A stretch of DNA of 62,995 nucleotides, filler included, from Hydrolagus affinis (GCA_012026655.1; 4 parts of 4 records of this genome joined end to end with filler, not necessarily neighbours in it), one strand, 5' to 3'; positions 33,084 through 52,226 are shown, counted from the first letter of the whole stretch. Notes: a model not told the origin generated them from the letters alone. A program made the numbers and translations.

Positions 33084-36000
33084 CTTCTCAGCTCTACCTG
33101 AAGATGCCCAATGAACACTTGGAAGGTATTGATGGTGATTGGTTCCAGCACCCACAGTGCTGTCATTCACGGCATCCAATGGTTAAAGTGCGGAACTTCC
33201 ACGCGATCATGAACAGTTTTCAATGTATATTTAGAAGTTGCTTAATAGGCTACAACCAAAGGATTGTAGAATCTTAGCGAATAGTAGGAGGCCATATACA
33301 GACGGTTCATTGTGAACCGTAACAAGTCCCTTTTGTGAAAGAATATCTCAACATCTCCTATGTTATTATGTTGTCGATTGTATTCAATTTGTGAAATAAA
33401 TTAAAATGCTGTTAATGTTTAATATGTGTACGAAGTGTTGGATAGGATTAAGCAGTTTTGCAATTGACTGAAAATAGTTATTCTGGAGCTAGGTGCTGAG
33501 ATAACCCGTCTTACAAACAAGAGACCTCTGGTTTCGAAGCCTGGCAGCTTTGGGCCAAATTTTGGACACGTTTTCATAGTGCACACGCCGAAAAATAATT
33601 CACCGAATTTCTCGAAATTCTGTTTCCAAAAGAACAAAGCAATTGAGAACGATGGACATCTCAATGAGCTACACATGATGCAATGTCAAGTATTTTCATT
33701 GCAACTTTTTGCAACCTAGCAGCCAAACCTCTTTACAATACAGTATATTCTCTGTGAGACATTATAACTCACCGACATCAAAGATGAAACACAGCAGCAT
33801 TTCCATGTCAAGATTATCCAATCCACGACTGTTGGTTGGGACACTGATGAGCGTAATTGTCTACCGAGTTTCACTCACAAATATACAGTCAATTCACTTC
33901 ACAGTATATTCTGTGAAACGCATTGAGACAAAGTCTAGAGTCTGCGAAAAGCTCTATGTCAAATGCAAGGCTTACTATATTATGATTATTATTATCGATT
34001 ACATTCTGGGGCCTTGTTGTCAGGCTTACCATTGCAAGTTGGGGCTACAGTCAGTTACATATTCAATGACTTCATCGTCGCCAAATTTACTGTAAATAAA
34101 GCTATGCTTACAAATAATCACAAGTAATGGTATGGTTTCCATCAACGTCGTTTAGTCAGCGATTGCAACGCAAAACTACATGAAACAGCTCCATTCACGT
34201 TGGGAGGATGTCCCGTGTCGCTGGACTAGTTAGGCATTTGCTCTCGAATTGCGTTTTAGGATGAGGGAGGACTGGAATGCTTGGTGGGAGGGGGAGGGAT
34301 GGTCACTTTAGAGCCGATTGCAAACTAGGGCATTGATTAGGCATTAAAGTAGGAAAGGGTATTGAGTCTTCTTGTTCAACGTTATAGAACTTCATCCATA
34401 TTTATTTGCTTCCAATGTCTCTGTCAGTCTTCCTCAGCGCTCTTCACACACACATTGCGAAACCGGACACTAAGTTCCCTCTGTTAGAATGTCGCTGCTC
34501 ATTTCGTGTCATTCCATGTGATCCTTAAAATCCACCTGAACAGTCATGGAACGAGTGATCAACCTTTATTTCTGTGAGGGGGAATGCTAACCTAGAAAAC
34601 TGATCCATCGATCGATGTAGAACTGGTTTAGTACTTGCTGTGAGAGAGACAAAATCCGCGTGTGTGTGCGTGTGCGTGTGTGTGTGTGTGTGTTGTGTAA
34701 AGAGCCTTGATCAAGTTTTCACGTGACTTTATCCGAAACTTGGTCCTCAGGTTTGCCAGGCTAGTGCGGCACTCACTCTTAGTAACTCAATAGCAACAAC
34801 AATAACAACTTCGATTTATATAGCGCACTCCAAGCTGGACGGCGTCTTAGAGCGCTTCACTGTAACGGATCCCTGGGGGCAGCCATAGACTGGGAGACAA
34901 ATGGGAGCGAAGGCACGGTCGAAAAGCAAGATCTTGAACTGAGTCCTGAATCTAGGAATAGAGGGGAAGAGGCGAAGTGGGTGAGGAAGGAAATTCCATA
35001 TCCTCGTGTCACAGTGGCACAAGGCACGGCTATCGGTGGTGGAGCGGAGGATTTAGGGAACAAGGAAGTTAACTGAACCGGAGGAGAAAAGGCAACGGGA
35101 CCTGGTTTGAGGAGTGAGGAGGATGGGGATGTAGGTGGGTGCAGAGGAGTGGAGAGATTTGAAAACAAGATTGAGGATCTTGAATTCGAACCTCTTCGGG
35201 GAAGGTAGCCAGTGGATTCTGACAAGGACTGTGGTAATGGGGGAGCGAAGTTTGGTGCGGGTGAGAATGCGGGCGCCAGAGTATTCAATGAGATGGATAA
35301 TCTCATCCAAGTTACAGCTCAATGTGCTTGAAAGGAACGGCTTTGTCCAGGAAGCCGGGGTGGCTGAATAGAATTTTATTGTGACACCCTCAGTGACATC
35401 AGTGGCATTGAAGTATCTAGAATTGGAAATATTGGAGAATTCGAGATATTACGCATATTATGCAGAGATATTAGGCAAATATTGATTGTGTGTTGAGGGG
35501 AGAGGAGGTCGGGGAGGTAGGATGTTTCAGAGGCTTGGAGTGAATTAAAGCAAAGGAGTGTGTGTTTCTGCGTGTATGTGTGTATGCTGAGTAAAGAACC
35601 GAGCTTAAGTTTTCATATGGCACTGTCCGAACCTGAGTCCACAAGTTTGCGAGGACAGTGCTGGACCAACTCTGAGTAGTTGAATCGTAATAAAAAATAA
35701 TGATCCTGGCATTTGAAATAGCGCTTTTCACATCTTGTCGACTATGTCTCAGAGCGCTTCACAGAAGATACGGTAAAGTGATTTGACTGTATGTTTTTGA
35801 GCGAAACGCGGCAGCCAAGTGCACACAGCNNNNNNNNNNNNNNNNNNNNNNNNNNNNNNNNNNNNNNNNNNNNTTAATTAATTAANNNNNNNNNNNNNNN
35901 NNNNNNNNNNNNNNNNNNNNNNNNNNNNNTTCGTGTTTCACCCCCGCCCAAACACTCCCCTCCCAGCTCGGGTCACACTCCCCCTGTGCAGCGCCTTGAG

Positions 36001-37761
36001 ACGTCCTCCCGACGTGAAAGGCGCTCTATAAATGTAATTTGTTGTTGTTGTTGTTGTAACTTGTTTTTGTTCTTGGATAGATAAGTGTAAGATACTCACA
36101 TAAAATACAAACAGGAAAATAGCAAAATTAAAAATTAGTTGACATTTTGAAACACGACCTCACGGTATGTGTCTGACTCCTTTGTGCAAGGCGAACATTT
36201 AGTCACGAAACAAACCAACATATCAAATTCAGCTAATATTTTATTGAAAGCAATTTGAGATAATTGATATGAAAAGTAATTCTCAAAAAAGTGATACAAC
36301 ATGTTTTTCTCGTTGTCAGAAATTATTCCAAAGTATTCAATAATTCAATTAACAATTACATTTATATAGCGCCTTTCACGACAGGAGGATGTCCCGATGC
36401 AGAAATACACAGTACAGAGATTTGACGTAATTTAAGTTTGTCTCTTGAAACCTTGCATTTTTTTTTTGAAAAGCTACATTTCTATTCATAACTTTACAAA
36501 TGCAAAATCTCATCAATTACCATTAATTTCATGCTGTTGGTAAAACTCTGCCGTGCAGAAATTAGTGCCCACATTTGCCTACAATATAGTTCGTCAGTGT
36601 GTGTCTCATTAATTTCCTTTGAAATGCTTCAATGTAATTATGCAATATAACAGATTAAAGGATATTATTATGGTTGATGACAGCAATAACTGTAACAATA
36701 ACAATAATGCACAGATGAATTTGAGGTTTTTCTTTTTCTTTTCATATATAACACACATGGTTTTCTTCTCATGCGCTTAGATGTAAACTGTACATTCCCT
36801 TGATTCTTCAGTTGTACTGCGAACGGACATCTGCCTCTTCTTTCTTATACGATCTATAACAGAATATAATTATGAATATTGGTGAATTATTAATTATGTT
36901 ATTGACTTCACTATTCACAACTTTTGACATAATAGTGGTCTTTTATGTGACATCTGTTTGCAAATTCTGTTTGTAATGGATTACGCGAGAAATAGAAAAA
37001 TCTGTTTCTCGTATAATCCGTCCCCAAAAAATTAATTGATCATTTCAATCCATGACTGTTTTTGAGACACTGCTATGCACAATTGGCTGCCGCATTTCTC
37101 CCACAAATATATACATCAATTCACTTTACAGTATATTCTGTGAAGCGCTTTGAGACATCTAGAAGACGTGAAAAGAGCTATATCAAATGCAAGGATTATT
37201 ATTATTATAATTTGCCAAGCATCCTTCACCCAAATGTGGAAGCATCAATTTGTTACCCCATTTTATTCACGTTGTTTAAAACCAACTATAATGCAATTCA
37301 CTTTACAAACTTGCTCAAATTGTAGGAAAGAAAGATTATTCCACTACCGCATCAACATACAGTATTAAAATTTTGGTGGGGAGTAATTTTAGGTAAGTTT
37401 CTTTACTCTACATGCCTCTGTTGCGCCACAGCAAGTTGGAACCCAGTCGTTAGACAATTAGCAGATTCTTTTTTGGAGTAATAATCCCTAAAAAGATGGT
37501 CACGACTACTTGTAGAGCACTGCTGAGTTTCAATTGACCACCACATTTTGACCGCAAAATATACAGTCAGTTTGCTTTACACTAATGATAATAATGTGAA
37601 GTGCTTTGAGACGTCTCAATTGCATCATATAACACTCTATCAAATGCAAGGATTATTATTATTATATTTAAATAATGTAAAAATATATTTCAGCTTGTTT
37701 GTTCAGCACCACAAACAATTTAATATTAAAACAACATCATTCTCAAAAAGCAATAAATATT

Positions 37762-40700
37762 TTACCTTTGAACGGGATGAATTCTGAAATGGTCCACAAC
37801 AATGATGGTCAAGAGTAGTATTACCAACACACTCCATGTAAACCTGGTAATTATAGTATAGGATTTTCCATCAGAACCTATGAAGTAATAATAATAATCA
37901 TAAATAAAAACAGAACCACGAGTCTGTGTGCTCTTGGTGATGCTCAGCTGAAATGAAATTAATTGGTTTAGACTGAACAAAAAAATCAACAACACCCAAG
38001 CCGTGGGGGGGGGGGGTGGGGGGAAGGGGGGGTGGAGGGTCGGGGCAGGGGGAAGGAGAGGGGGAAGAGTTAGTGGGAGAGCCGTAGGTGTCGTAGAAGA
38101 GACCGACCTTGAAGGAGGAAAGCGAGGAAGCGAGGCAGAGGGGCTGTGGGATGGAGTTCCATAGTGTGGGAGCAGAGAGGCTGAAAGTCCGGCCGCCGAT
38201 GGTTGGGCGGTTAGGGTGATGGATGCGGAGCAGGCCAGGAAGAGTGGCACACCATTATATACCAAGTCAAACACCACTGGATTCTAAGAGATTGATAGAT
38301 TGATAGATTTCTAATGGATAGAGGGATTAAGTGATATGGGGATAAGGTGGGCAGATGGAGTTAGATTACAAAATAAACCATGAATTTATTGAATGGTGGG
38401 ACACCTTAAGCGGCCGAATTGCCGACACCTGCTTCTAATTCCTATGTTCCGAATAGAGATTAAATGTCAAGTCAATTATTATTAATCTTTGCACTTGTTA
38501 TAGCGTCTTTCAGACATCTCCTAGGGCTTCACAGAATGGACTGATAGTGAACTGATTGTATATTTTGTAAGCGAAATGCTGCAGCCAATTGTGCACAGCA
38601 GTGTTCCACAAACAGTCATGCATCGCGTGACCAAATTTGTTTTGAGGGATTATCACTTCAGGAAAAGTGATCCACTAATTGAATAACAACCAGATTCCTA
38701 ACTACTGCTACATAATCAGAGGCGTGTCGAGTAAAGAAACTTGGCAAATGTAAATTATTTGGAAAAGAGAAAGACAACTGAATTTTACATTACACCAGAT
38801 GCTGCTGAAACCCGCTTCCACATCTTTTGCATTGACCACAAACACACTCCTTATTGATCCACCCAGTTCCACAATGCACAAGTCCAATTCATCCAAATCT
38901 GGGCTACTCATTTCCTCACATTTCCAAAACCTGCACGCTGATGATCCTGGTCTCCTTCTTAACTCCGAAGATATAGAATTCAGAATCTTCAGCCTCATGT
39001 ACAAATCCCTTAATACCCGGGCAGCCCCCAACCTCTCTGACCTAATGGCATCCCCTTTACACAGATGGCATAGGCAAGCCTGGGGAAAGTCCAATGACCA
39101 TAATCATTGGCTGTGCTTTCAGTGCTGTGACTCTAATCTTTGCAAATCACTGCCTTAATCCTTCCACTTTGCCACCTTTCTAATTATTTTTAATACCTCT
39201 TTAACAATTCCCCCTTTGGAGGCAGCTATGATCACCCTCAGCTTCCGAGCCCCTTACTGTGCAGCGTCCCATACACTGCCCTGTATGAAGAGTGCAATAT
39301 ATATGAGGTTAGAACACTCGCCTTACAAGCATGAGACCTGTGTTCGAATCCAGGCAGATCAGGGCGAAACCTTGGGCAATTTTCCTTACTCCACATGCCT
39401 AATAATAATCCATCCAAAAAACCCACAATAAGAAAATTGCTCATTTCAATCCATGACTGTTTGTGCAATATTGCCGTGTGCAATCGGCTGCAGCATTTTG
39501 CCCACAAATATACAGTCAATTCACTTCACAGTATATTCTGTGAGGCGTTTTGAGATGTTGATATGTTGTCAAAAGCACTATATCAAAAGCAAGGATTATT
39601 ATACTATAATGTATATAATGTACTATATATTATTTTAATTATTATATACATATGAAAGTGTATTCGCAGTTGACTTCTCATAGCATTTTTCTACAGGAAA
39701 ACTGTGAGCATGGGTCAAAATGCTCAATTTAGGAGAAATTAATGTGAAGACACACAATCCACTTTAAAATATATTATGCAAAGCATTTTGAGATGTATCA
39801 ATGATATAATACATTGTTTTATCAAAGGGAAGGACACTGAAGATTATTATTATCATCATTCTAAACTGATAGCTGGACGCATCCATGGAGTAATCTCTGG
39901 ATCTCATTCCCATTTCGGTGAAAATGAGCAATCAAATCCGGACACACCAATACAATAGAAACAATGTTTGGGAATTACATCACCTCATACACATGCAAGA
40001 AATATAATCAGATAATAGGAGCGTGTGAAACTATTAACATTAATTGACAATCAGATGGTTGGCATCCTACCTGGGTCAGAGAACTGAACTTTGTAGTTGG
40101 CAATTTCTGGAATCTGAAGGCTGATGTGTGAAACCTGACAGGTATAAACAACCCCACTTTGGACAGGCTTGTTCTCTTCCACAAAGCTTGAAGCTTCATA
40201 CAATCCCTCTGTATTCTGCTGTTTCGAGATATTTAATCCAGATGTAATTTTAGTGCCATTTTTATACCAAGTAAGGTTAAGATTCTCTGGATAATATGCA
40301 GTGGTTTCACACACAAGAGTCAGAGTGTTTTGCAAACCTATTTTAGGAATTTTGGAGAAAATCTTCAGTGGAGTTGGAGGAACTGTAGAGCAAACAGTAC
40401 AGCAAAATTACAAAATTTACATCTGTTAGTGGAGATAAAATTGCATTACAATATGCATACTATTCCTTTCACAGAATTTTGATATTGGTTTATTATTATT
40501 TGCTTAACATTTAAAGAAATAGTTAGTTCTAAGTTTGATTTGTTTCCCATCGATAACAACTATAAAGTTATTTTGGGAAAGAGCCATTGTCACTACAGTT
40601 CCCCCCACCCACCCCCAAATAAACAGATACACTAAAAAGAAAGCACACATTTTCATTGAATATCTCAATCTCCACTAAATAAAATATTATTTTCCAAAAT

Positions 40701-42737
40701 TCCGATGGCATCTTCACATTATACAAATTTGATCTTGTATTTTTTTTCTATACATGGAACAATAAAAAAATGGATTGTTCTAGAGTTACGGAGTGAAATT
40801 CCGGAGAAGAATATAATTTTCGAGCCATATAGTCACAACAGCAATGTAGCCAATGTTGATATATTCTATTGTTTTTCTCCTCAGAAAGATGAACAAATAG
40901 TTAAGTATAATACTCTATTTAACTAAGTGTATTTAATTGTTTACTGGAATTGCATTTAGTGCAAATTTGAGTTTTAAATTGCCTAAATCTTAAAAACCAA
41001 ATTTAAAATCTTTATATTTGTTATAGGGCCTTCTAATTCGAAATGCCTCAAATGCACAACTAGCATTTTGAATGTGTAATTTTATCTGGAGACAAAATTG
41101 TAGGTTATTAATGAGCACATCGAGAAACTCGTCTATTTTTGAAAAGTGTAATTTTGTTAATGTCGATCCCATCCATCTGACTGGATATTGATCGTGTCTG
41201 AATGAAGGCACTTCTGGTAATCCAATACTCCCCAATACTTGAGATGTCTAGAAGACATGAAAAGCGCTATACCAAATGCAAGGAATATTATTAGTATTAT
41301 TATTATTCCTAGTTAATACTCCAGCAAGTGCTTTTCAAACATGATGAGCATGCAAGATTCAGTTATTTAGTAAAGCTTTTTTTAAAGAAAATTTTTGATG
41401 AGCCAGCAGTCTGATATGTACTTAAGAGTATCTAAACCAAACCATGTATCTCACCCACACATGGAAATTCCCATTTATTGGAATGTAATACACTGCCTTC
41501 CCAAATAGACCCATCCTGTTCCTATGTCGACCATTGGTGGCCTCGAGGCTCTGGAACTCCCTTCCTCACTCCCTTCACCTCACCCATCTCTTCCTACCTT
41601 CAGATCTCGGGAAGACCTTTCTTTTCGACCACTGGCTCGGCCCCAAGACCTGTTATTGTGAAGTGCTCTGAGATGCCACCCAGCGTGGAGGGATCAATCC
41701 AAGTTTTTATTGTTACTGTTGGGTTAGTAATTCCACAGGGTATTACGCACATGCTGGCAAAAGCCAAGGCTTGGGGACCCCAGAGTGCTTGTTGGGGTAC
41801 TGTTGGCATCTAAACAGATAATACCCCATCGCTCGCCACTGTCTCCGAAGGTTTCTCACTGTTGTCCATCGAGTACAACTGTAACCATTAGGGCTTTGAC
41901 TTGTAGGTTTAATAGAAGCTGAGTGGGAACCATCCCTAACACTAGAGACTCGACCTGTTGATCAGTCAGGCTGGCTGGGCTGTCACCAGAAGTGCTTTGG
42001 AGTATTGCAAACCTGCCTGGCTCAGGATCATATTACCTCAACCACTGCAGAGAGTTTACTTGTTTCAGACTTTGTATTGCAAGCTTGTTACCCTGGAACT
42101 AAGTCAGCTCCAAGCAGATCCCACCTCCCCCCAAGAGGTACATTTTGAAGGAAAACACTGTGAAACACCCAATTCATATTCTTAAAATGATAAAAAAAAA
42201 TATTCTTCATCCATAACTTTTGGCACCATATCTAATTTGGAATATTCCATACCTACCGCATACAACCAGATGTGATCCAGGTCCACTGGCCACTAATTTT
42301 CCCTCAATCATGAGGGCACACTGATACACACCAGAGTCCTGGAGACTCACATTTAGGAGCTTAAAGAAGCTGCTTTGTTTGCTGTCAAACCCAAACAGTT
42401 TTCTTTTATCCGGCTTCGTATGCAGGTATCCATTGTCTTCCTGCTTCCACCAATACACTTTTTTACGCAGGTTGGGTTGAGTGTCAGGAAACATGCAGTG
42501 AAAGGTAACGTTAGTGCCTCTAATTGCCTCCACATGGTCGGGGAGTTGGGTCACTCTGGTCATTGTACCGTCAACAACTATCAGAAATAATTTCAAATGC
42601 TAATTAGAAAGAGAATAAAAAGTATAAATTTATGTAATTTAGTTCCTTTTTGGGCAAATTGGCATATAGAAGGAATACTCACCTGTGGATATAATCCCGA
42701 TCAGATATACACACTGAAACACATAACTCGCCAACAT
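37762..42737 (-). CDS. non-rearranging IgSF receptor gene A: leader-VJ-C1-TM(Arg)-short tail
   Basis: Exons with GT-AG and phase-1 junctions: leader 42737-42683, VJ 42577-42257 (ends SGPGSHLVVC), C1 40382-40071 (LVCETTAYYPENLNLTWYKNG...YTCQVSH), TM 37877-37762 (GSDGKSYTIITRFTWSVLVILLLTIIVVDHFRIHPVQR*). A possible extra tail exon 36853-36808 would add SYKKEEADVRSQYN*. Confidence 0.8.
39295..39602 (+). mobile_element. tRNA-headed Deu-core SINE
   Basis: Head GGTTAGAACACTCGCC...GTTCGAATCC, core and tail; lies in the C1-TM intron of gene A. Confidence 0.7.
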
Positions 42738-42829
42738 TCTCATCACGTGTTGAGACTAAAGATGAAGCTATTATTATTCAGTAGTAAGTAATTGTAGTTG
42801 TTTAAGATTTTATATATAAGGCAATGATG

Positions 42830-42870
42830 ACTGACTTCCTGTCTCTGTCAGTTTAGATGATTGGTTGAGT
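42830..42870 (-). promoter_or_regulatory. putative promoter of gene A (Ets motif)
   Basis: CTGACTTCCT (AGGAAGT on the minus strand) about 100 bp upstream of the ATG; also present upstream of gene B at about 51530-51560. Confidence 0.35.
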
Positions 42871-43049
42871 GTTCAATGGGATTTGCAACAGCATTTGTCC
42901 ACGTAAAAGTTATTATTATATCTCGTCAGTTTTTTTGATGGACATCAAAGCCTGGATGAACGCAACGTCCCAACAGTTGAACAACAGAATTAAATATGTA
43001 GGAGGGCAGCTGCAGATACGATTGAAGAGTAGGGTCTTGAGTCTAGCCA

Positions 43050-44050
43050 TGAATGAGGCAAGGGAGGGAGTAAGGTGAAGGTATTATGGCATGGAGTTGC
43101 AAAGGGTAGAGTCAGAGAGGCTAAAAGCCCAGCCACCAATCATAGGGCTGGTCAGACAGGAGATATGCAGCAGTTAGGGGCCTATTGAATGGACAGAGCA
43201 GGCAGGTTGATAAGGGATCATCTGGTTAGAGTGGTAAGGGTGGTCATGGGAATGGAGAGCCTTGTAGATGAGGAAGAGGATTTTGAATTCTATCCTTTGA
43301 GGGGTGGGGAGCCAGTGGAGCTGGGCAAGTGTGAGGTTTAGGGTGATCTGTAGCTTGTGAAGGGAAGAATTGAGGAGGCCAGCAAGGAGGGAGATGCCAT
43401 AGTCAGGCTTTGAGGTTACAAAGGCATGTGTGACAGTTTTGTTGGCCTAAGAGGTGAGGCAGTGACTGACTAGGACAGAGATGGTGGAATACAGAGCTGA
43501 TATGGGGGAGAAAGAACAGTTCAGGGTCAAAGAAGACACCTAAGGTTTCTAATTGGATTGGTGAGATGGAGTGTGCATCCATGGATGTTGATGCTGCCAG
43601 TAAATGAGGTGCAGATGCACTGGCATGAGCCAATCAGGAGGGCCTAGATTTTTCTGACATTCAACTGTAGAAAGTTATCTCTCATCCATTACTTGATGTC
43701 TGACAGCCAATCTGTCAGGACTCCAGTTTTCCTGGAATAAAGGATGGAGGCAGGGATAGAGTTAGGTGTCATCCACGTACATGTGGGTATTGATCCCATG
43801 TCTGCTGATGGTGTCACCAAGGGGATCATGTAGAGGTTGAAGAAGATAGGACCAAGGACAAGCCCTGTGCAACAGCACATGTGTTGGTTTGGGAGCTGGA
43901 AGAGAAACTGTTAGTGGAAACAAATTGGAGATGGTGTGAGATAAGACCGGAAAGAGTCAAGGACCGAACCTTGAAGGTTGAGGTGAGAGGAGAGGTAGTG
44001 GAGGAGGATTGAATGTTCCACGGTGTCAAAAAGTGAGATTCTTGGGGTAA
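43050..44050 (-). mobile_element. degenerate L2 LINE fragments
   Basis: RT-like remnants (GLVLGPIFFNLYMIPL; LETLGVFFDPEL) with frameshifts. Confidence 0.6.
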
Positions 44051-45314
44051 TATGCTCGTGTTTGACACAGGAAAGTCAGAGACGCAAATGGGTTGCATTT
44101 AGGAAGTGTAGGGAAAATCATCAACTGTATTGGTGGAACTGTAGATCAGATCACTGAGCAGAATTACATAACTTCTGTGCAAATTGTTTTTCTTTTCAGC
44201 TCCCACAATTCATTTAATCATAATGTTCCACTCAAATCTGTTATGCACATGTAAATGGTAGCAAAAGGAAGTTTAGCTGCATATTATTTGTGTGATATAT
44301 AGTCTTATAGTTGGAATGGAATTGGAGATGGAAACTCAGGACAAGAAAATAGATTTTGAACTGTGTCACAACACAGCTGAGAAAGTCCTTTATATTCCTC
44401 CTCAGCAGACTGGAGAAATGGTTTGTTGCTGAAGTAGTATTTAGTGAAATAATTATTTCTTTGGAATGGTTTAATGTTTTACTGGGGGAAGGTGGGTGAC
44501 ATGTAATTTCTGACAAATAATTTGCAGTGGTAATGACCATGGTTATAGAAACAGAAATGTATCATGATAAAATATTTAGGAGTTTGTGGCAATTCAAAAA
44601 CTTAATTTTCTTCATTAAGTTGACCTGCAATGTTCTTATTTAATTTATGAGGAGAGACACTTCAGTATAATCATAGAAACTCTTTCAGCAATCAATAGAA
44701 TCACTACATAGTGAGTAACACCAAATATATTAACTGCGAATAGAAGGACATAGGTCAATAAATCGTATTCTATATTTAATCACATTCAGTGAGAAGCTTG
44801 CAGTGGAACTATATACGTCACTGGCAAGCGTAGCAAAAATAACAGCCTTTGAAAATTTTGCTACTTCCGTTTCAGTGTGTTTAAGCAGATACACGACCAT
44901 TGGAACGCCCACTGTTTAACCTTATCACGGATTGCATCTGATTGTGGTAACAAACTCTCAAAGTAACACATGAGACATAGCAGTTTGTTACTATTCTAGA
45001 GATGAAGTGTTTGAAAGCGCAAAATGTGTTTTATGAATTCTGATCGTGTTTTGGATGAGACGTTAAACCGAGGTCCTGTCTGCCTGTTCAAGTGGACCCT
45101 AAAGATTTCAAGGCACTATTGGAAAAGAGAAGAGAGATTCTCCCAGTGTACTGACCAACATTTCCCCAAATAGAATTGGTCACTCACTACATGACTGTTT
45201 ATGGGACTTTGTTGAGCCCAGATTGTCTACTGATTTTACCCACAGAATACAGCCACACTTACTGTGAAGTGTTTACTGTCTGGACAATGTGATCAGGCAA
45301 TAACTGCATGCTCC

Positions 45315-45632
45315 TGCAGCTTAATGGTTAGAGCACTCGCCTTACAAGCGTGAGACCTGTGTTTCAAAACCAGGCAAATCAGGGCAACACCTTGGGCAAG
45401 TTTCCTTACTCAAAATGCTAACAATAATCCATCCAAAAAAAACCACAATAATAAAATAAGTTTGTGGGATTGCTGTGCCCAATTGGCTCCGGCATTTCGC
45501 CCACAAATATATCAATTCACTTTACAGTATATTCTGTGAAGCGCTTTGAGATGTGTTTCATATTCTGTGAAAAGCGCTATATCAAATGCAAGGTTTCTTA
45601 TTATAACTACATCAAATGCAAGGATTATTATT
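45315..45632 (+). mobile_element. tRNA-headed Deu-core SINE
   Basis: Full-length copy between genes A and B. Confidence 0.7.
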
Positions 45633-47032
45633 CCTTATGAAATGGTTGTTTGAAAAAATGCACCATTACACCCATCTCTTTTAAATAGATTACATAGTTT
45701 TATTGGTATTTGTGTGGTGCTTTATCAGTTATTTTTGGTTAAAGTATTCATGGTTACATTTAGAGACATTGTAATGTTAGGATTAAACATGACACTTTTT
45801 TTTAAGCAATGAAGCAGTGTAATATTGCCATGATCAGCAATATATACTTCCTTTTTTAAAAATAAAACCCAGCAGACACAACAATTTGGGAGGAGGGAGT
45901 ACCTCAATGAAGGTGTGGGGAGTAGATGATGAAATATGCGATGAAAGAGGAAGTCTTAAAATGGACCTTAAATGAGGCGAGGGAAGGCACAAGGCAAATG
46001 GTTTTCCAGTGAGAGTTCCAGAGAGGGGGAGCAGATAGGCTGAAATCCTGACTATCAAAAGTGTGACAGGGAACGTGGAACAGGTCAGTGCTCACTGAGC
46101 AGCGGGCAGGGTGGATATTTAGGGTTGACGAAGGTTGCAGAGGTATGGTGTGCAAGATGGTGGCGAGATTTAAAATTGAGGACAAGTATCTGGAACTCTT
46201 CTGAAGGATGGAGGCCACGCAAGAATGGACAAAAAAAGTAATGATGCAAATAACTATAGGTCTGTTTGAGATACGATATCAGATTAGCAAAAACAGGCCT
46301 GATATGCTATGCATAACGCAACAGTACCAACATAGATACATTTGCTTCTGTCCCCATTGTACCATTATGCTACTGTTGGTTCCTTGTAGTTGGTTGGTTC
46401 CGCGACTCTATGCTTTCTCACGTGTATCTGGGCATATTCTGTTTTACTATCACTGCATTCAGGATTTCTCTTTCCCTTTGTTTTGGAGCCAGACAAGTCC
46501 AAACTTGCATACGTCAGCATGTTACCGTCTGCCACTTGTTTGGTCTGTGAAGGGAATGGTTGAGATTCCAGTTACTAACTCATTTTATCAGCATGTAGAA
46601 ATCTTCAAATCTTCAAAAGTAACTATTTGACCCTGTTGTGCATCCAGTAAAGAACCACCCAATGCTAAACTCAGACTCATGAAGCCAGAGTTCACAGTCG
46701 ACGGTCTCCGTTCTATGATACATCCAACTAGATGTGATATCTCTTAGTTTGTGCAGTGCTAATTGACTGATGGGAAACAGTTATTAATATCACTGTAGGC
46801 ATGTTCTATTGGTGATATCACATATTTTGCCTATTTGGACTACTTGGACACTACCCTGCAAATGTACCAGAGTCCAGACAAGCGGCTGAGGAGAGGATGA
46901 AATATAGTAGGAGGAAAAGCTATCGTATTACACAAACAACATTATCCTAAAAAATAAATGTTAGTTCAATTTTACTTGATATCACCAGATATCATATTAG
47001 TTATAAAGAATCTATATCACAATTTTATGTAC

Positions 47033-49068
47033 CTTGGCACCTACTGCCACTTTCCCTGGATGTCTTTTCAAATCAGGTGGGACATATTCCACCGTCTCAT
47101 ACGTCTCTTCATGGATTTTCTGTAAAACACAAGGTGTGGTTATTTGGTTGGTCCTGGTCTTTACTTGTCTCCGCTGCTGGTTAAGCAATACAGCATCTGA
47201 ATATTAATTTGGAAACTTGACTTGTTTTGCAATCTGTGTGGAGGCCGGCTAAATGCAGTGAATCTGTAATAGAGACCCAGATACAGGTATCTGTTCATCT
47301 CTCATCAAACCTCACATTCACGTACACCTGAAAATAGTCAAGGAAGAGTCTCGCACCAGGAGAGCTGCCTCAAAATACAGCTAATATTTTCAGAAGCCAT
47401 TATAAACACAATGCTCATGCCTGCTATTAAACATTGTATAATAAAATCACATCTGTGCAATGTACAACTTCTATATAAATCAAAGTTGTTGCTGTTGTTG
47501 TTATATACATCACGGCTCTTATGCCATGTAATAGAAATAAACGTCAGCTGCCATGTTTCAAATATTTAACATACAACTTGCACTGTTTTACGTAGATTTA
47601 TGCAACAGTGCTTCATTACACCTCATACCATATACTAAGCAGATGGATAGCTTACAGAAAACATTGGAATGACACAGTGAAGGGGGGCAATAATTAGAAG
47701 TAATGGAAGCGGGTAAATGAGGCATTCAACGTTAACAATGGTGAGAATATCATTACAACACAAATCTTATTCCATTGTAACATGGAAACATCTTCTCAAA
47801 TTAATTCTGTGCTTTACCTGCTTTCCACAAACGTCACACCCATTCAGCTTTCTGTGCGAGCCTGAAACGAAAACAATTCAAAAAGTGAAATGTACTGAAT
47901 TTTCATATTATCTTATACGCCCATGAAAATGGGTGAGCGAACTAAAACTGTTTGCCTACCCAATAGCTTTCTGCTACGATTTATAAAATATAAAAGCTTA
48001 CTATTGCAGGATAAGGGCAGCAACAATCTTCCTTTACTGTTAACTGTACAATAAAAAGAGATGGTGGGAAAGCATTAGGCTCAGTTTAGCCAGATTGGAG
48101 ACTTGGGAACTGCATAGATTGTCTTGGAATATTACTGGCAAAGATTTGCACCTGCCTTACTCAAAACTAAATTGCTGAATCTAGGTCCTCATGCAGGTTT
48201 TCAAATCCATTCACTCTCTGGCACCTCCCTACCTCTCCGACCTCCACACTCCGCAGTCCACCACCCAGTGCTTCTTCTTGATTGGCACCGGGCCCCTGTT
48301 CACCATCGCACCCAGTGTCCCACCATCACAGGTCACACTTTCAGCCACTATACCCCAAATCTCTGGAACACACTCCCTCACTTCCTCCACCTTGCCTGAA
48401 AACCTTCCTCCCACCCCCCAACCCCACCATCCTGTAGCCCCCTATACTGACATTTCAACCAATACATATAGATATGATAAGACTTGAGACATTTGTTGTC
48501 CAGAGTAAACTTCTGCTGTAAACGAACATCTAATTAAATTACCAGTTTGGTGTTCGCAACATAAATTTCAGTGGTATAAAAGTATCACATTGCTTTATTT
48601 TTTATCCTTTCAACCACATTAATAGCCGTGCCACCCAGGGACCTGTTAAGTTACTCATGGAAGTATTACGTTAAAAGAAAAAGAAAATTAAAGCCTAATT
48701 AAAACCTAAATGTATCTTACCTTTCCTTTTTGTTAATCGCCATGACATTACAATGATTAAAAGTACGAGAAATGTCAATCCTGCACATCCAGATATTAGT
48801 ATTTGATAGACTTCAATATTATTTCCTATTCCAATAATAATACAAACAAAAAGGTAAAACAGTATTAGTTCATTCCATTTAGTGTTGTAAACAGAATATG
48901 CCAATGATTGTGAAAGACTGTACAAATGTAATTTATTGTTAATGATGCACTACATAATGGTAAATACTAATAATTCTTGAATATCATGGCTTTCACATAG
49001 AGAGCAAGTCTTACAATGCTTCACAGGATGTATTGCATAGAGCATTTGATAGAAAAACATGCAGATAT

Positions 49069-49101
<33 letters not shown>

Positions 49102-51438
49102 AAAAAGAATGAGTGGATTTTACCTAATTTGCTGTAATTAATAGTAGGAAATATTCTTTTGAAAAAAATACAGATTTTAAATTTTATTATGACAGTAAGA
49201 TTGTTGGCATCCTACCTGTGTTGGAGAACTGAACTGTGATCAGGTAATTGGCAATTTCTGGAATCTGAAGGCTGATGTGAGAAACCTGACAGGTATAAAC
49301 AACCCCACTTTGGACAGGCTTGTTCTCTTCCACAAAGCTTGAAGCTTCATACAATCCCTCTGCATTCTGCTGTTTAGAGATATTCATTCCAGATGGAATT
49401 TTGGTGCCATTTTTATACCAAGTGAGATTAAGATTCTCTGGATAAAATGCAGTGGTTTCACACACAAGAGTCAGAATGTCTTGCAAACCTATTTTAGGAA
49501 TTTTGGAGAAAATCTTCAGTGGAGTTGGAGGAACTGTAGAACAAATGGTGCAGCAGAATTACAAAAAGTTACATCAGTTGGTGAAGATTAAACTGTATCA
49601 TGATTTGTATACCATTTGTTTCAATACAGAATCTTGAGTATGATTTATTTGCTTTGTAAAATCTTTAGTTCTGATTTTGATTTGTTCGCCATCAATAACA
49701 ACTATAAAATTTGTCACGGGAACGATACTCTATCACTAAAGTTCCACTCAAAAATTAATAAATATAGAATGTAAAGTTACCACATTGAATGTCTCAATCT
49801 CCGCATAATAAAATATTATTTTTCACAATTCTGATATGTATCCCCATTCAAACAAATTTGTTCTTTTCATTTCTCCATACCTGGTACTGGAGTAATAAGA
49901 AAAACTGTTTTATAGTTATAGATTGAAATTCCGGAGAAGAAAATAATGTTTGAGCCACATAGACAATCACAACAGCAATGTAGCCAATGCTGATATTGTA
50001 TTCATTCTCAGTGAAATGAAGAAATAATTAATTACTGACATTATATTTAACTAAATCTATTTAGTTGATGATTGAAATCATATTTAATGAAAATTTGGAG
50101 TTTTAAATTGTCAAAATCTTAACAAAATTAGGTTTTAAATATCCTTGCATTTGATATAGATTCTCAGTAAGTTGAAATCCCTCAAATCACATCACAAAGC
50201 TTTTTTGTATGTACAATTTTATCTGGAGAAAATTCTGTCTGGAGATAAAATTGTGGATATGTTCATTGGCACACCGGGAGGCACTCTTTTCAAAAGGTAT
50301 CATCTTTTTACTGTTAATATCAAATGGCGGAATGGCTATTGATCTTATCCAAATAAAGAAACTGCTGGTAATGTAGCGCTGCACAACATTCCCAGCTAAC
50401 GCTTTAGCACGTGCTTTCCAAACATGTAAGAATATGATAAGAATAATAAAATTAAAAATTAAGATTCACTGTTGCATATGAGTGCATGATCTATGTGACA
50501 TAACCGTATCCATGAGGGCTATATTACCTGCAGAGTTAATGTTAACAGGTTCAATGTTATCAGCCTGCCCAGAATGACAAGCCTGTCTCTCTTAGTCCAA
50601 CTGATGAACTAGGCTGGCAACAGTCGTGCCCCAGAATACTGCAGCCCTGCCTGGGTCAAGAGCTGGACCAATGACTGAGGCCATTGCAGAGGGTTGATAT
50701 GATTCAGACATTCCATTGGCAAGTGAATAATTCGGGAGTCATCTCCAAGCAGACCCCACCTGGTCCCAGGAAGATTCGTTTTAAAGGATAACATTTTGAA
50801 ACACCTGTTTCACATTCTAAAAATAATGAAAATGTCCTTCACACATGGTCAGAGTTTTTGGCTCAAAATCTAATTTGGAATATTGCCGTTCTTCACTGAA
50901 ACCATACCTACCCCATACATCCAGACGTGATCCAGGTCCACTGGCCGCTATTTTCCCCTGAAGCACGAGAACACAATGATACACACCAGAGTCCTGGAGA
51001 TTCACATTTTGGAGTTTAAAGAAGCTTTTTTGTTCACTTTCAAACTCAAACAGTTGTCTTTTGTCCTCCCTTGTATGCAGGTAGTTATTCTCTCCCTCTT
51101 TCAACCAGTAAACTTTTACACGTGAGTTGAATTGAGCGTCAGGAAACATGCAGTGGAAAGTAACGTTAGTGCCTCTAATTGCCTCCATATGATCTGGGAT
51201 TTGGGTCACTCTGATCATTGTACCGTCAACAACTATCAGAAATAAATTCAAACGTTAATTAGAAAGAGAATTACAGTGAAAGACAAAGTAATGCACAAAG
51301 ACTTATTCTATCAATAAAAATAATATTACATTACGTCATTTATTTCCCTTTTCGGCAAATTGGGGTATAGAATGAACACGCACCTGTGGAAATAATCCCG
51401 ATCAGATATACATACTGAAACACATAACTCTCCAACAT
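47033..51438 (-). CDS. non-rearranging IgSF receptor gene B: leader-VJ-C1-TM-tyrosine tail (last exon unresolved)
   Basis: Leader 51438-51384, VJ 51232-50912 (ends SGPGSRLDVW), C1 49533-49216, TM 48825-48721 (GNNIEVYQILISGCAGLTFLVLLIIVMSWRLTKRK), probable tail exon 47196-47033 (DAVLLNQQRRQ...KIHEETYETVEYVPPDLKRHPG...). The tail exon is less certain than the ectodomain exons. Confidence 0.8.
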
Positions 51439-51682
51439 TCTCACCGTGTGTTGAGACCAAGGATGAACCTATTACTGCTCAGTAGTAAGTAATTGTAGTT
51501 GTTTAAGATTTTATATGAGGCAATGATAACTGACTTCCTATTCTCTGTCAGGTCATACGATTGGCTCGGAGGGTTCTCTGGCATTTACAATTGTCCACTT
51601 AAAAGTTATTTACTTTCAGTTATTTTATTGGAAGCTTAAACTCCATCTGAAAGAAACAATCAAAGTTTGTGGTAATGTTATT

Positions 51683-52226
51683 AACAACAACAACAACAAC
51701 AACTTAAACTTATAAAGCGCCTTTCATGTCGGGAGGACGTCCCAAGGCGCTGCACAGGAGGCGTGTGACCCGAGCTGGGAGGGGGCTGTTCGGGAAGGGG
51801 TGAAACACGTAGGGGAGGTCGAAAAATTCAGGGGGGAACAAAAGGCACGGTTGAAGAGGAAAGTCTTCAAACTGGCCTTGAAAGAGGAAAGGGAAGAAAC
51901 AAGCCGGAGGGATTGGGGGATGGAATTCTATAGGGTCGGGGCAGAAAAACTGAAAGCCTGGCCTCCGATGGTGGGGCGGTTCGGGTGGGGGGCTTGGAGC
52001 AGGCCAAGACCTGCTGAACGGAGGGTCCGGGTGGGCTTATAGGGGGAAAGTAAGTCAACAACAACAAATTACATTTATAGAGCGCCTTTCACGTCAGGAG
52101 GACGTCCCAAGGCGCTGCACAGGGGGAGTGTGACCCGAGCTGGGAGGGGAGTGTTTGGGCGGGGGTGAAACACGAAGGGGAGGTCGAAGAATTCGGGGGG
52201 GAACAAAAGGCACGGTCGAAGAGGAA
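51683..52226 (-). mobile_element. two tandem young L2-like 3' ends adjoining a gap; near-identical inverted copy at 35930-36056
   Basis: GCGCCTTTCACGTCAGGAGGACGTCCCAAGGCGCTGCACAGG with a (CAA)n tail. Confidence 0.65.

Follow-up and report, generated by a model that had tools for sequence, protein, structure and literature searches.

Two tandem V(J)-C1 receptor genes of the chimaera Hydrolagus affinis, a probable inhibitory and activating pair within a family of cartilaginous fishes

How could genes that share the domain plan of antigen-receptor chains, a V domain closing in a J-like strand and followed by a C1 domain, signal if they do not rearrange, and to which family of receptors do they belong? 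The question is raised by a stretch of DNA from the chimaera Hydrolagus affinis (GCA_012026655.1; hereafter the window, 62,995 nucleotides (nt) in its whole length with filler included, from whose first letter all positions are counted), in which a first-pass annotation, made from the sequence alone, had placed two such genes, here called gene A and gene B. The genome sequence analysed comprises the 16.3 kb between two assembly gaps (35930-52226), the remainder of the piece being N. It is very likely that genes A and B form a tandem pair of germline-encoded, non-rearranging type I receptors, with gene B the inhibitory and gene A the activating partner, and that both belong to a V(J)-C1 family which the searches made here found only in cartilaginous fishes.

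Exon reading and assembly resolve the two genes as tandem paralogs, both on the minus strand, with an open frame and canonical splice sites at every junction, gene A having four exons and 269 amino acids (aa) and gene B six exons and 340 aa. Gene B begins with a leader, MLESYVFQYVYLIGIIST (51384-51438, minus strand), whose ATG and donor (cag/gtgcgt) were read directly and which ends in phase 1; it is followed by a V-set exon that closes in a J-like G strand, …ASGPGSRLDVW (50912-51232, minus strand; Pfam V-set E 2e-8), by a single C1-set domain (49216-49533, minus strand; Pfam C1-set E 3.5e-13) and by a directly read exon for the stalk and an uncharged transmembrane (TM) segment, QILISGCAGLTFLVLLIIVM with SWRLTKRK after it (48721-48825, minus strand), which again ends in phase 1. 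Gene A is built in the same order, from a leader paralogous to that of gene B, MRMLASYVFQCVYLIGIIST (42683-42743, minus strand), a V-set exon with the J-like strand …ASGPGSHLVVC (42257-42577, minus strand; Pfam V-set E 1e-8), a single C1-set domain (40071-40382, minus strand; Pfam C1-set E 3e-13) and a directly read exon with the stalk, an arginine-bearing TM segment, YTIITRFTWSVLVILLLTIIVV, then DHFRIHPVQR and a stop (37763-37877, minus strand), the whole of which translates as GSDGKSYTIITRFTWSVLVILLLTIIVVDHFRIHPVQR before the stop. Both leaders are split in phase 1; that of gene B is 81-92% identical to the leader region of gene A and aligns with the leaders of relatives. The closest relative of the gene B V exon, at 70% identity, is found in Callorhinchus milii, and this exon keeps the family-invariant Q, C, W, D-x-G-x-Y-x-C and G-x-G. 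Family-invariant immunoglobulin (Ig) residues are, in fact, all retained in both genes. The first-pass description of two tandem paralogs, each with leader, V exon, J-like strand, C1-set exon and TM segment, is thus borne out by Pfam and by exon reading.

Both V exons end in ASGPGS-x-L-x-V, that is, in a J-like G-x-G-S-x-L-x-V strand for which the consensus across the family is NGTGSxLxV, and a splice donor stands directly after it. A scan of both strands of the piece for heptamer and nonamer pairs resembling recombination signal sequences (RSS), with spacings of 12 or 23 +/-1 bp, found none, where 0.055 would be expected by chance. Since the V exon closes in its own J-like strand and donor, and no RSS accompanies it, genes A and B are non-rearranging VJ-C1 genes, and on the missing RSS as on this plan the first-pass annotation was correct.

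The signalling part of gene B required a different model from the one proposed at first. The TM exon ends in phase 1 and the exon with TYETV and EYVPP, which had been taken for the tail, is in phase 0; a direct joining of the TM exon to that exon, or to the last exon, was tried and rejected, as the phase mismatch leads to an immediate stop. Because direct joining fails on phase, a bridging exon was sought, and a mini exon of 44 nt was found at 47818-47861 (minus strand, phase 1 to 0), with the splice sites ttttcgtttcag/GCTCG…CAG/gtaaag, which restores the frame. Its peptide, GSHRKLNGCDVCGKQ, is similar to the GSHKEINGSHRSGEQ of relatives, with a score reached by none of 300 shuffles. The last exon, TKQVADGNMLTYASLDL…TEYAQIHVRK… up to the stop (46365-46544, minus strand), is homologous to the repeated tail units of many relatives (tblastn E 6e-9). 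It codes for TKQVADGNMLTYASLDLSGSKTKGKRNPECSDSKTEYAQIHVRK… and a stop, and holds a canonical immunoreceptor tyrosine-based inhibitory motif (ITIM), LTYASL, and a canonical immunoreceptor tyrosine-based switch motif (ITSM), TEYAQI, with their tyrosines 25 residues apart. The TM exon is itself homologous to the inhibitory-type TM of relatives. As for the TYETV/EYVPP exon (47033-47119, minus strand, phase 0-0), its splice sites are good and it would preserve the frame if spliced in, so that it is a possible cassette exon. Nevertheless, tblastn returned no matching family protein (the best score was reached by 36 of 300 shuffles) and the RNA data described below gave it zero reads against 32-44x on the flanking exons; it is probably not used. 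The earlier tail was therefore mis-modelled on an exon with neither RNA nor homology behind it, and the statement that gene B lacks a canonical ITIM has to be withdrawn.

In gene A, about 5-6 residues of the helix separate the arginine from the outer face, Asp-His stands at the inner boundary and a tail of 10 residues follows, which agrees with the early TM arginine, the acidic residue after the TM and the short tail described at first. Three of the features by which paired receptors are recognised are found at this locus, namely adjacent paralogs with similar ectodomains, an ITIM in the one, and a basic TM residue with a short tail free of motifs in the other. A search near gene A for exons of the inhibitory type, and near gene B for an exon with an arginine TM, found none. 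The paired-receptor reading consequently holds, and more strongly than it had been stated; gene A keeps its activating-type role on account of the TM arginine and the short tail, while the description of gene B as merely signalling gives way to that of a canonical inhibitory receptor with ITIM and ITSM.

By analogy with known receptors, the binding of a ligand to gene B would lead to phosphorylation of its tail by Src-family kinases, upon which ITIM and ITSM would dock the tandem SH2 domains of SHP-1 or SHP-2, to which the 25-residue spacing of the two motifs would be suited. The arginine of gene A would instead pair with the TM aspartate of an adaptor that carries an ITAM (immunoreceptor tyrosine-based activation motif). 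An arginine in the outer part of the helix is the geometry of receptors that partner FcR-gamma or CD3-zeta, such as NKp46, NKp30, Fc-alpha-RI and GPVI, whereas the partners of DAP12 have a lysine in mid-helix; on this comparison, an adaptor of the FcR-gamma/CD3-zeta type would be likelier than DAP12, in agreement with the first-pass annotation. The differences between the two V domains lie mostly in the C-C' and F-G regions and would let the partners bind related ligands with different strengths.

How the two genes diverged can be followed along their DNA. Similarity between 40045-42914 (gene A) and 49190-51610 (gene B), at 75-85%, runs from upstream of the leader to the exact 3' end of the C1 exon. 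As it halts precisely there, the two genes have unrelated exons for TM and tail, as the first reading had it. The ectodomains are 79% identical over 211 columns. The V domains are 71% identical in amino acids and 84% in DNA, with a ratio of nonsynonymous to synonymous substitution rates (dN/dS) of 0.62 and a dS of 0.27; the C1 domains are 91% identical in amino acids and 94% in DNA, with a dS of 0.12, and dN/dS is below 1 in both. The intron adjoining the C1 exon is only about 75% identical and, since the exon is thus more alike than its intron, homogenisation in addition to constraint is suggested; the pattern suggests gene conversion confined to the C1 exon (40071-40382 against 49216-49533). 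At the boundary of V and C1, gene A and several of its C. milii relatives have a cysteine before VPPTPLK (…LVVC/VPPTP; 42257-42262 in gene A), where gene B has a tryptophan (50912-50917). If unpaired, this boundary cysteine could make an interchain disulfide, and the two partners may accordingly differ in dimerisation.

Between the two genes, at 44029-44139 on the minus strand, lies the 5' third of a C1 exon, VPPIQLMIFPTLPKCNPFASLTFLCQTRAYYPKNLTF, broken by an in-frame stop (tblastn E down to 5e-7) and 78% similar in nucleotides to the intron/C1 boundary of gene B; it looks like the remnant of a lost third copy. It abuts a fragment resembling a long interspersed nuclear element at 43499-44027, with a reverse-transcriptase-like open reading frame (ORF), …GLVLGPIFFNLYMIPL…, and this fragment is also present in the C. 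milii cluster described below.

Are the genes alive? Four runs were mapped to 45600-51500, one of them DNA-like and the other three stranded single-cell RNA runs that share a sample. A receptor transcript was seen in one of the three RNA runs (X15), with all reads oriented as expected for minus-strand RNA. Depth over gene B was 2-15 on leader and V (7-15 on V, low on the leader), 69-83 on C1, 7 and 44 on the TM exon and 32 on the last exon, and in most intron bins it was either zero or no more than about 1; the non-exon bins with appreciable depth coincide with repeats, where the DNA-like run has a very high depth of words. Loose read ends reconstruct the joint of C1 to TM in a closely related transcript. 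Moreover, a loose end at 48742 reads …AAAGGAAAG and continues with GCTCACACA, the start of the mini exon, where the window has GCTCGCACA, and this is the joint of the TM exon to the mini exon. The reads are 90-99% like the window and diverge at their borders, for example TVQISEAGPDNQSLQILISG against TVQFSNTGNNIEVYQILISG in the window; from this likeness together with the divergent loose ends, their origin is either a recent paralog or the orthologous gene of a related animal. It is evident that a very close ortholog or paralog of gene B is expressed in a subset of the libraries, and that this near-identical homolog is both transcribed and spliced.

It might be argued that one or both genes are non-functional copies in a cluster of fast turnover, so that the pairing has no present function. 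The broken third copy of the C1 exon between them would fit such a history, as would the RNA match of only 90-99%, which may stem from another copy, the loss from gene B of the upstream ITIM exons of the family, and the tryptophan that replaces in gene B the boundary cysteine of gene A and several C. milii members. The frames are nevertheless open across four and six exons with canonical splice sites throughout, the family-invariant Ig residues are kept and dN/dS is below 1 in both domains, and it is most improbable that one or both genes are non-functional.

To which family, then, does this pair belong? An exhaustive HMMER search with the gene B V exon against 1.84 billion representative proteins gave 252 matches at E<=1e-3, and every checked match that combined a V domain of this type with a C1 domain came from a cartilaginous fish. 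Relatives with the V(J)-C1 plan occur in Callorhinchus milii, Scyliorhinus, Heterodontus, Heptranchias, Mustelus, Carcharodon and Cetorhinus, and further in Chiloscyllium, Hemiscyllium, Mobula, Hypanus, Hemitrygon and Leucoraja, and nearly all of them have a single C1. Searches with a family member, with the family alignment or with the ectodomain region likewise returned only chondrichthyan members of the family. Along its entire length, gene A is 60% identical to C. milii XP_007902896.1 (266 aa), …SRFTLSMLLILFLAIIIVDHFRKNPL up to the stop included, and its TM exon shares 59% identity with the final exon of C. milii XP_007902898.2. The family, with both of its tail types, is already predicted in at least 10 chondrichthyan genomes, and genes A and B are ordinary members of it; the paired Ig-like design is in itself well known. 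What had been presented as a system of its own therefore turns out, in part, to be a case of a known family with the same tails: the paired design remains, and the uniqueness is lost to a wider family in which both tail types recur. No description of the family was found in the searchable literature, the coverage of which excludes key shark-immunology papers that might mention it. The automatic NCBI names of its members range over SIRP-alpha-like, SIRP-beta-1-like, tapasin-related, NCR3LG1-like, CD276 homolog, Ig lambda-like and MHC II beta-like, and being mutually inconsistent they carry no weight as evidence on the family.

In C. milii the genes form a cluster on scaffold MU249845.1 that reaches at least from 15.22 to 15.83 Mb, that is, at least 600 kb, and which was sampled as +/-10 kb windows. 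Nine of these sampled windows (about 260 kb) hold only genes of the family, among them an adjacent trio of inhibitory, activating and inhibitory members. No stretch orthologous to the H. affinis piece was found in the nine, just shared short interspersed nuclear elements (SINEs) and C1 exons of 73-79% identity. Three matches to the gene B V exon (P0016, P0005 and P0019) are gene models with five or six tandem V domains of the VJ type and are either multi-V receptors or concatenated V exons; in P0016 each V domain ends in YYCVKFKSD…GSGTRLYV, which is strikingly like the SIRP V-domain signature.

Two tail designs recur across the family. In the inhibitory design, to which gene B belongs, a TM of the form …LI(A/S)GCAGGGLAFLVLLIIIGK… is followed by a long tail with one to three units of [x-TYA-x-LDL … TEYA-x-(I/V)]. 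The activating design, which includes gene A, has the TM R-(F/L)-x-L-x-x-L-V-I-L-x-L-T-x-I-I-V-(D/E)-H and a tail of about 8 to 35 residues; its R-x16-(D/E)H, with the charged residues 17 positions apart, is kept in eight of nine activating-type relatives from five species, and conservation of this TM exon extends over Callorhinchus, Heterodontus, Carcharodon, Heptranchias and Scyliorhinus. Both tail types are ancient, being common to chimaeras and sharks. The ectodomains tell another history. In a maximum-likelihood tree of V-C1 ectodomains, genes A and B are sisters (support 100/99) nested in a clade otherwise made up of C. milii members; C. milii XP_007902898 pairs with its inhibitory neighbour XP_007902825 (branches of 0.02 and 0.005, 90% identity), and Heterodontus P0036 pairs with Mustelus P0032. 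The activating ectodomains are scattered, with seven state changes for seven activating rows, and the approximately unbiased test rejects a single activating clade at p 5e-56, a group that was named after the tree had been seen, though the margin is very large. With scattered ectodomains on conserved TM and tail exons, the signalling exons are thus old, and ectodomains have repeatedly been re-paired with them or homogenised between neighbouring genes, by duplication, exon shuffling or gene conversion.

Could the family simply be the SIRPs of cartilaginous fishes? On this account genes A and B would be true orthologs or co-orthologs of tetrapod SIRP-alpha and SIRP-beta, and the family a chondrichthyan SIRP with a CD47-like ligand. 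The plan does comprise a VJ-type V domain, an ITIM/ITSM tail and an activating twin, and many members have been named 'tyrosine-protein phosphatase non-receptor type substrate 1-like' or 'signal-regulatory protein beta-1-like' by NCBI; five other family names are, however, given to members by the same pipeline, so that the names amount to no evidence. The tail of gene B, LTYASLDL…TEYAQI, resembles the ITYADLNL…TEYASI of SIRP-alpha, but ITIM-ITSM pairs about 25 residues apart are generic, and PD-1 has one as well. The C1 exon of gene B matches domains 3 and 2 of SIRP-gamma/alpha in the PDB, those of SIRP-gamma at 31.5 and 20.5 bits respectively, yet its single-C1 matches favour B7-H6 (42 bits, E 7e-10), MHC II beta (41 bits) and TAPBPR (38 bits). 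In the PDB, even the closest matches to the V domain (pIgR, Robo, CD79b, PD-L1, a TCR, NAR) are weak, and SIRP, B7-H6 and UrIg2 are all absent from the 60 best. Searches of the PDB with family V and C1 profiles were set aside as uninformative on family rank, since multi-domain chains (titin, Robo, Ig heavy chains) add up their scores.

Structure gives a similar picture. A model of the V-C1 ectodomain made with AlphaFold, with C. milii XP_007902896.1 as its first row, reached a predicted local distance difference test score of 89 and superposes on domains 1-2 of SIRP-alpha and SIRP-beta with a TM-score (template modelling) of 0.7. Against Swiss-Prot, Foldseek gave many matches at E 1e-15 to 1e-13 and 17-25% identity, with B7-H6 the best, together with PD-L1, SIRP-alpha, CD276, Ig kappa, CADM2, butyrophilins, TCR beta and SIRP-beta; the E-values for SIRP, B7-H6, PD-L1, CD276, Ig kappa and TCR beta span only about one order of magnitude, so that these families score alike. 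A feature search in the Atlas returned SIRP-beta-like, NCR3LG1, Ig-kappa-like and tapasin-related clusters and ranked the 'SIRBL' cluster second. Further against the SIRP account, genes A and B and nearly all relatives have one C1 rather than the V-C1-C1 of SIRP, with a gap of only 390 bp between C1 and TM in gene B, and the activating form has its arginine near the outer face with a conserved DH, where SIRP-beta has a lysine in the middle of the TM. True orthology with SIRP is accordingly unlikely, although it deserves to be kept in mind. Overall, in sequence and in predicted structure the family lies about equally far from SIRP, from B7-H6 and from the Ig and TCR chains.

The same comparisons bear on the idea that these are B7-H6-like surface ligands, read by a receptor such as NKp30, whose tails serve reverse signalling or trafficking. 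Among single domains of the PDB, B7-H6 is what the C1 exon matches best, and it also leads the structural matches in Swiss-Prot, with PD-L1 and CD276 next there, and several members bear the NCBI names 'NCR3LG1-like' or 'CD276 homolog'. Against this stand its absence from the 60 best PDB matches of the V domain, the J-like G-x-G strand of that domain and, above all, conserved ITIM/ITSM tails and a short-tailed twin with an arginine TM on near-identical ectodomains, which are the signature of receptors and not of B7 ligands. We regard a ligand role as very unlikely.

A third possibility, closest to the thought that the genes sit inside the T-cell receptor (TCR) locus, is that they are a relic of an antigen-receptor precursor of a kind with UrIg2, which is a VJ-C gene that does not rearrange and that in elasmobranchs is linked to TCR-alpha/delta and IgH (PMC12227049). 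The split leader, the single VJ exon and the C1 domain are as in UrIg/UrIg2 (PMC12227049) and in antigen-receptor chains, UrIg2 (9dmx) comes first for the C1 exon when PDB matches are ranked by whole chain, and in the PDB Foldseek matches the model best to Ig light chains and TCR beta. The first rank of UrIg2, however, arises only from the summing of three domain scores, each amounting to only 17-24 bits. Moreover, UrIg2 has 9-11 C domains, against the single C1 of this family, and forms Fc-like dimers, and the paper reports neither an ITIM tail nor an activating twin with an arginine TM (PMC12227049). The claim that the pair is embedded in the TCR locus, linked to TCR V segments, rests on sequence outside the piece, in pieces unrelated to this one; no RSS or TCR-like segment occurs in the piece itself or in about 80 kb of the C. 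milii cluster, the three windows sampled first, and all nine windows hold only family genes. A precursor relic inside the TCR locus thus has a very slim chance.

The preferred reading, of a tandem pair with an inhibitory and an activating partner, has its own difficulties, and the following observations weigh against it. No experiment on any member of the family was found in the searchable literature. The RNA mapping covers the interval of gene B, gene A lying outside it, and what X15 supports is the exon plan and not the expression of exactly gene B. Gene B has a single ITIM/ITSM pair, where relatives have two or three. The arginine of gene A, being near the membrane boundary, could be a mere stop-transfer or snorkelling residue. 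Finally, B7-H6 acts in mammals as a ligand rather than as a receptor, and the structure and the C1 sequence are as near to it as they are to SIRP.

Several features of the surrounding DNA deserve mention. Copies of a SINE headed by a tRNA lie at 37013-37212, 39307-39627, 45312-45637 and elsewhere, with an Rfam tRNA match at 45315-45377 (31.7 bits), and the same tRNA-derived SINE is abundant, with 75-90% identity, in all sampled C. milii loci, which supports a holocephalan origin of the piece. Together with the nesting of genes A and B among C. milii members, this points to C. milii or a chimaera close to it as the source. Public DNA runs contain no more than about half of the 31-letter words, so that the source individual or species is not among them. 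Beside the gaps, the two ends of the piece (35930-36050 and 52056-52176) are inverted copies, 98% identical over 121 bp, and represent either a young repeat pair or a gap-edge effect of assembly; more diverged copies of this end repeat are found at 51684-51809 and in C. milii loci. Two GC-rich stretches of low complexity, at 38003-38277 and 51800-52067, have long Pro/Gly-rich ORFs on both strands and are repeated within the piece (78% identity) and in C. milii loci (about 73-84%); a further interspersed repeat, rather than coding sequence, is the most likely explanation.

What would such a family mean? Paired inhibitory and activating receptors are a recurrent design of vertebrate innate immunity, and here the oldest living lineage of jawed vertebrates presents a large, clustered V(J)-C1 family, in which an ITIM/ITSM tail and a separately conserved arginine-TM exon are common to chimaeras and sharks and the ectodomains have been shuffled from one tail type to the other. 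Kinship with the antigen-receptor precursor has long been discussed for receptors of the V-plus-C1 plan, SIRP being one of them (PMC2785349; PMC12227049). It is tempting, though quite a long shot, to propose that the family may be no side branch of SIRP or B7 but a surviving representative of the ancestral signalling receptor, with one V and one C1, of SIRPs, B7-H6-like molecules and antigen-receptor chains, and that the chimaera cluster might be linked physically to the TCR/Ig complex, like UrIg2 in elasmobranchs. Were this true, the ancient arginine-TM exon would date adaptor-coupled V-C1 receptors to the base of the jawed vertebrates. For comparative immunologists, the family offers something concrete to test, namely its adaptor, its ligand, the cells that bear it and its position with respect to SIRP, B7-H6 and UrIg.

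Placed beside known systems, the family shares something with each of them. With UrIg and UrIg2, it has in common the split leader, the single VJ exon, C1-type domains, the lack of rearrangement and the cartilaginous-fish host. With B7-H6/NCR3LG1 (3pv6, 4zso) it shares the two-domain ectodomain of V and C1, but B7-H6 is a ligand without an activating twin. Gene A resembles NKp30, NKp46, Fc-alpha-RI and GPVI in the TM arginine in the outer part of the helix and in the very short tail, and the V domain of NKp30 is likewise of the VJ type, its strand reading GNGT…L.V; these receptors differ in having no C1 domain. The teleost NITRs, LITR and DICP and the skate MDIR are likewise large, fast-evolving, non-rearranging clusters with ITIM and charged-TM members, and NITRs have a J-like motif in the V domain, but the second domains of NITR, LITR, DICP and MDIR are of the V/I or C2 type and not C1-set, and none of the four was among the relatives found for the family. 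The traits shared with SIRP (2wng, 4i2x) are the non-rearranging VJ-type V domain with C1-set domains, the inhibitory tail with its tyrosine pair, the short-tailed twin with a charged TM and the clustering of the genes; the family differs in having one C1 and not two, arginine with Asp-His and not lysine, and a V domain not detectably closer to SIRP than to other V domains. It may thus be likened to SIRP-alpha and SIRP-beta in its working mode, a likeness that stops short of established membership, and would not be assigned to B7. SIRP has itself been discussed as a relative of the antigen-receptor precursor (PMC2785349). Moreover, the re-pairing and homogenisation of ectodomains proposed here is the usual evolutionary pattern of paired receptors, as in SIRP, KIR, PIR and CD300.

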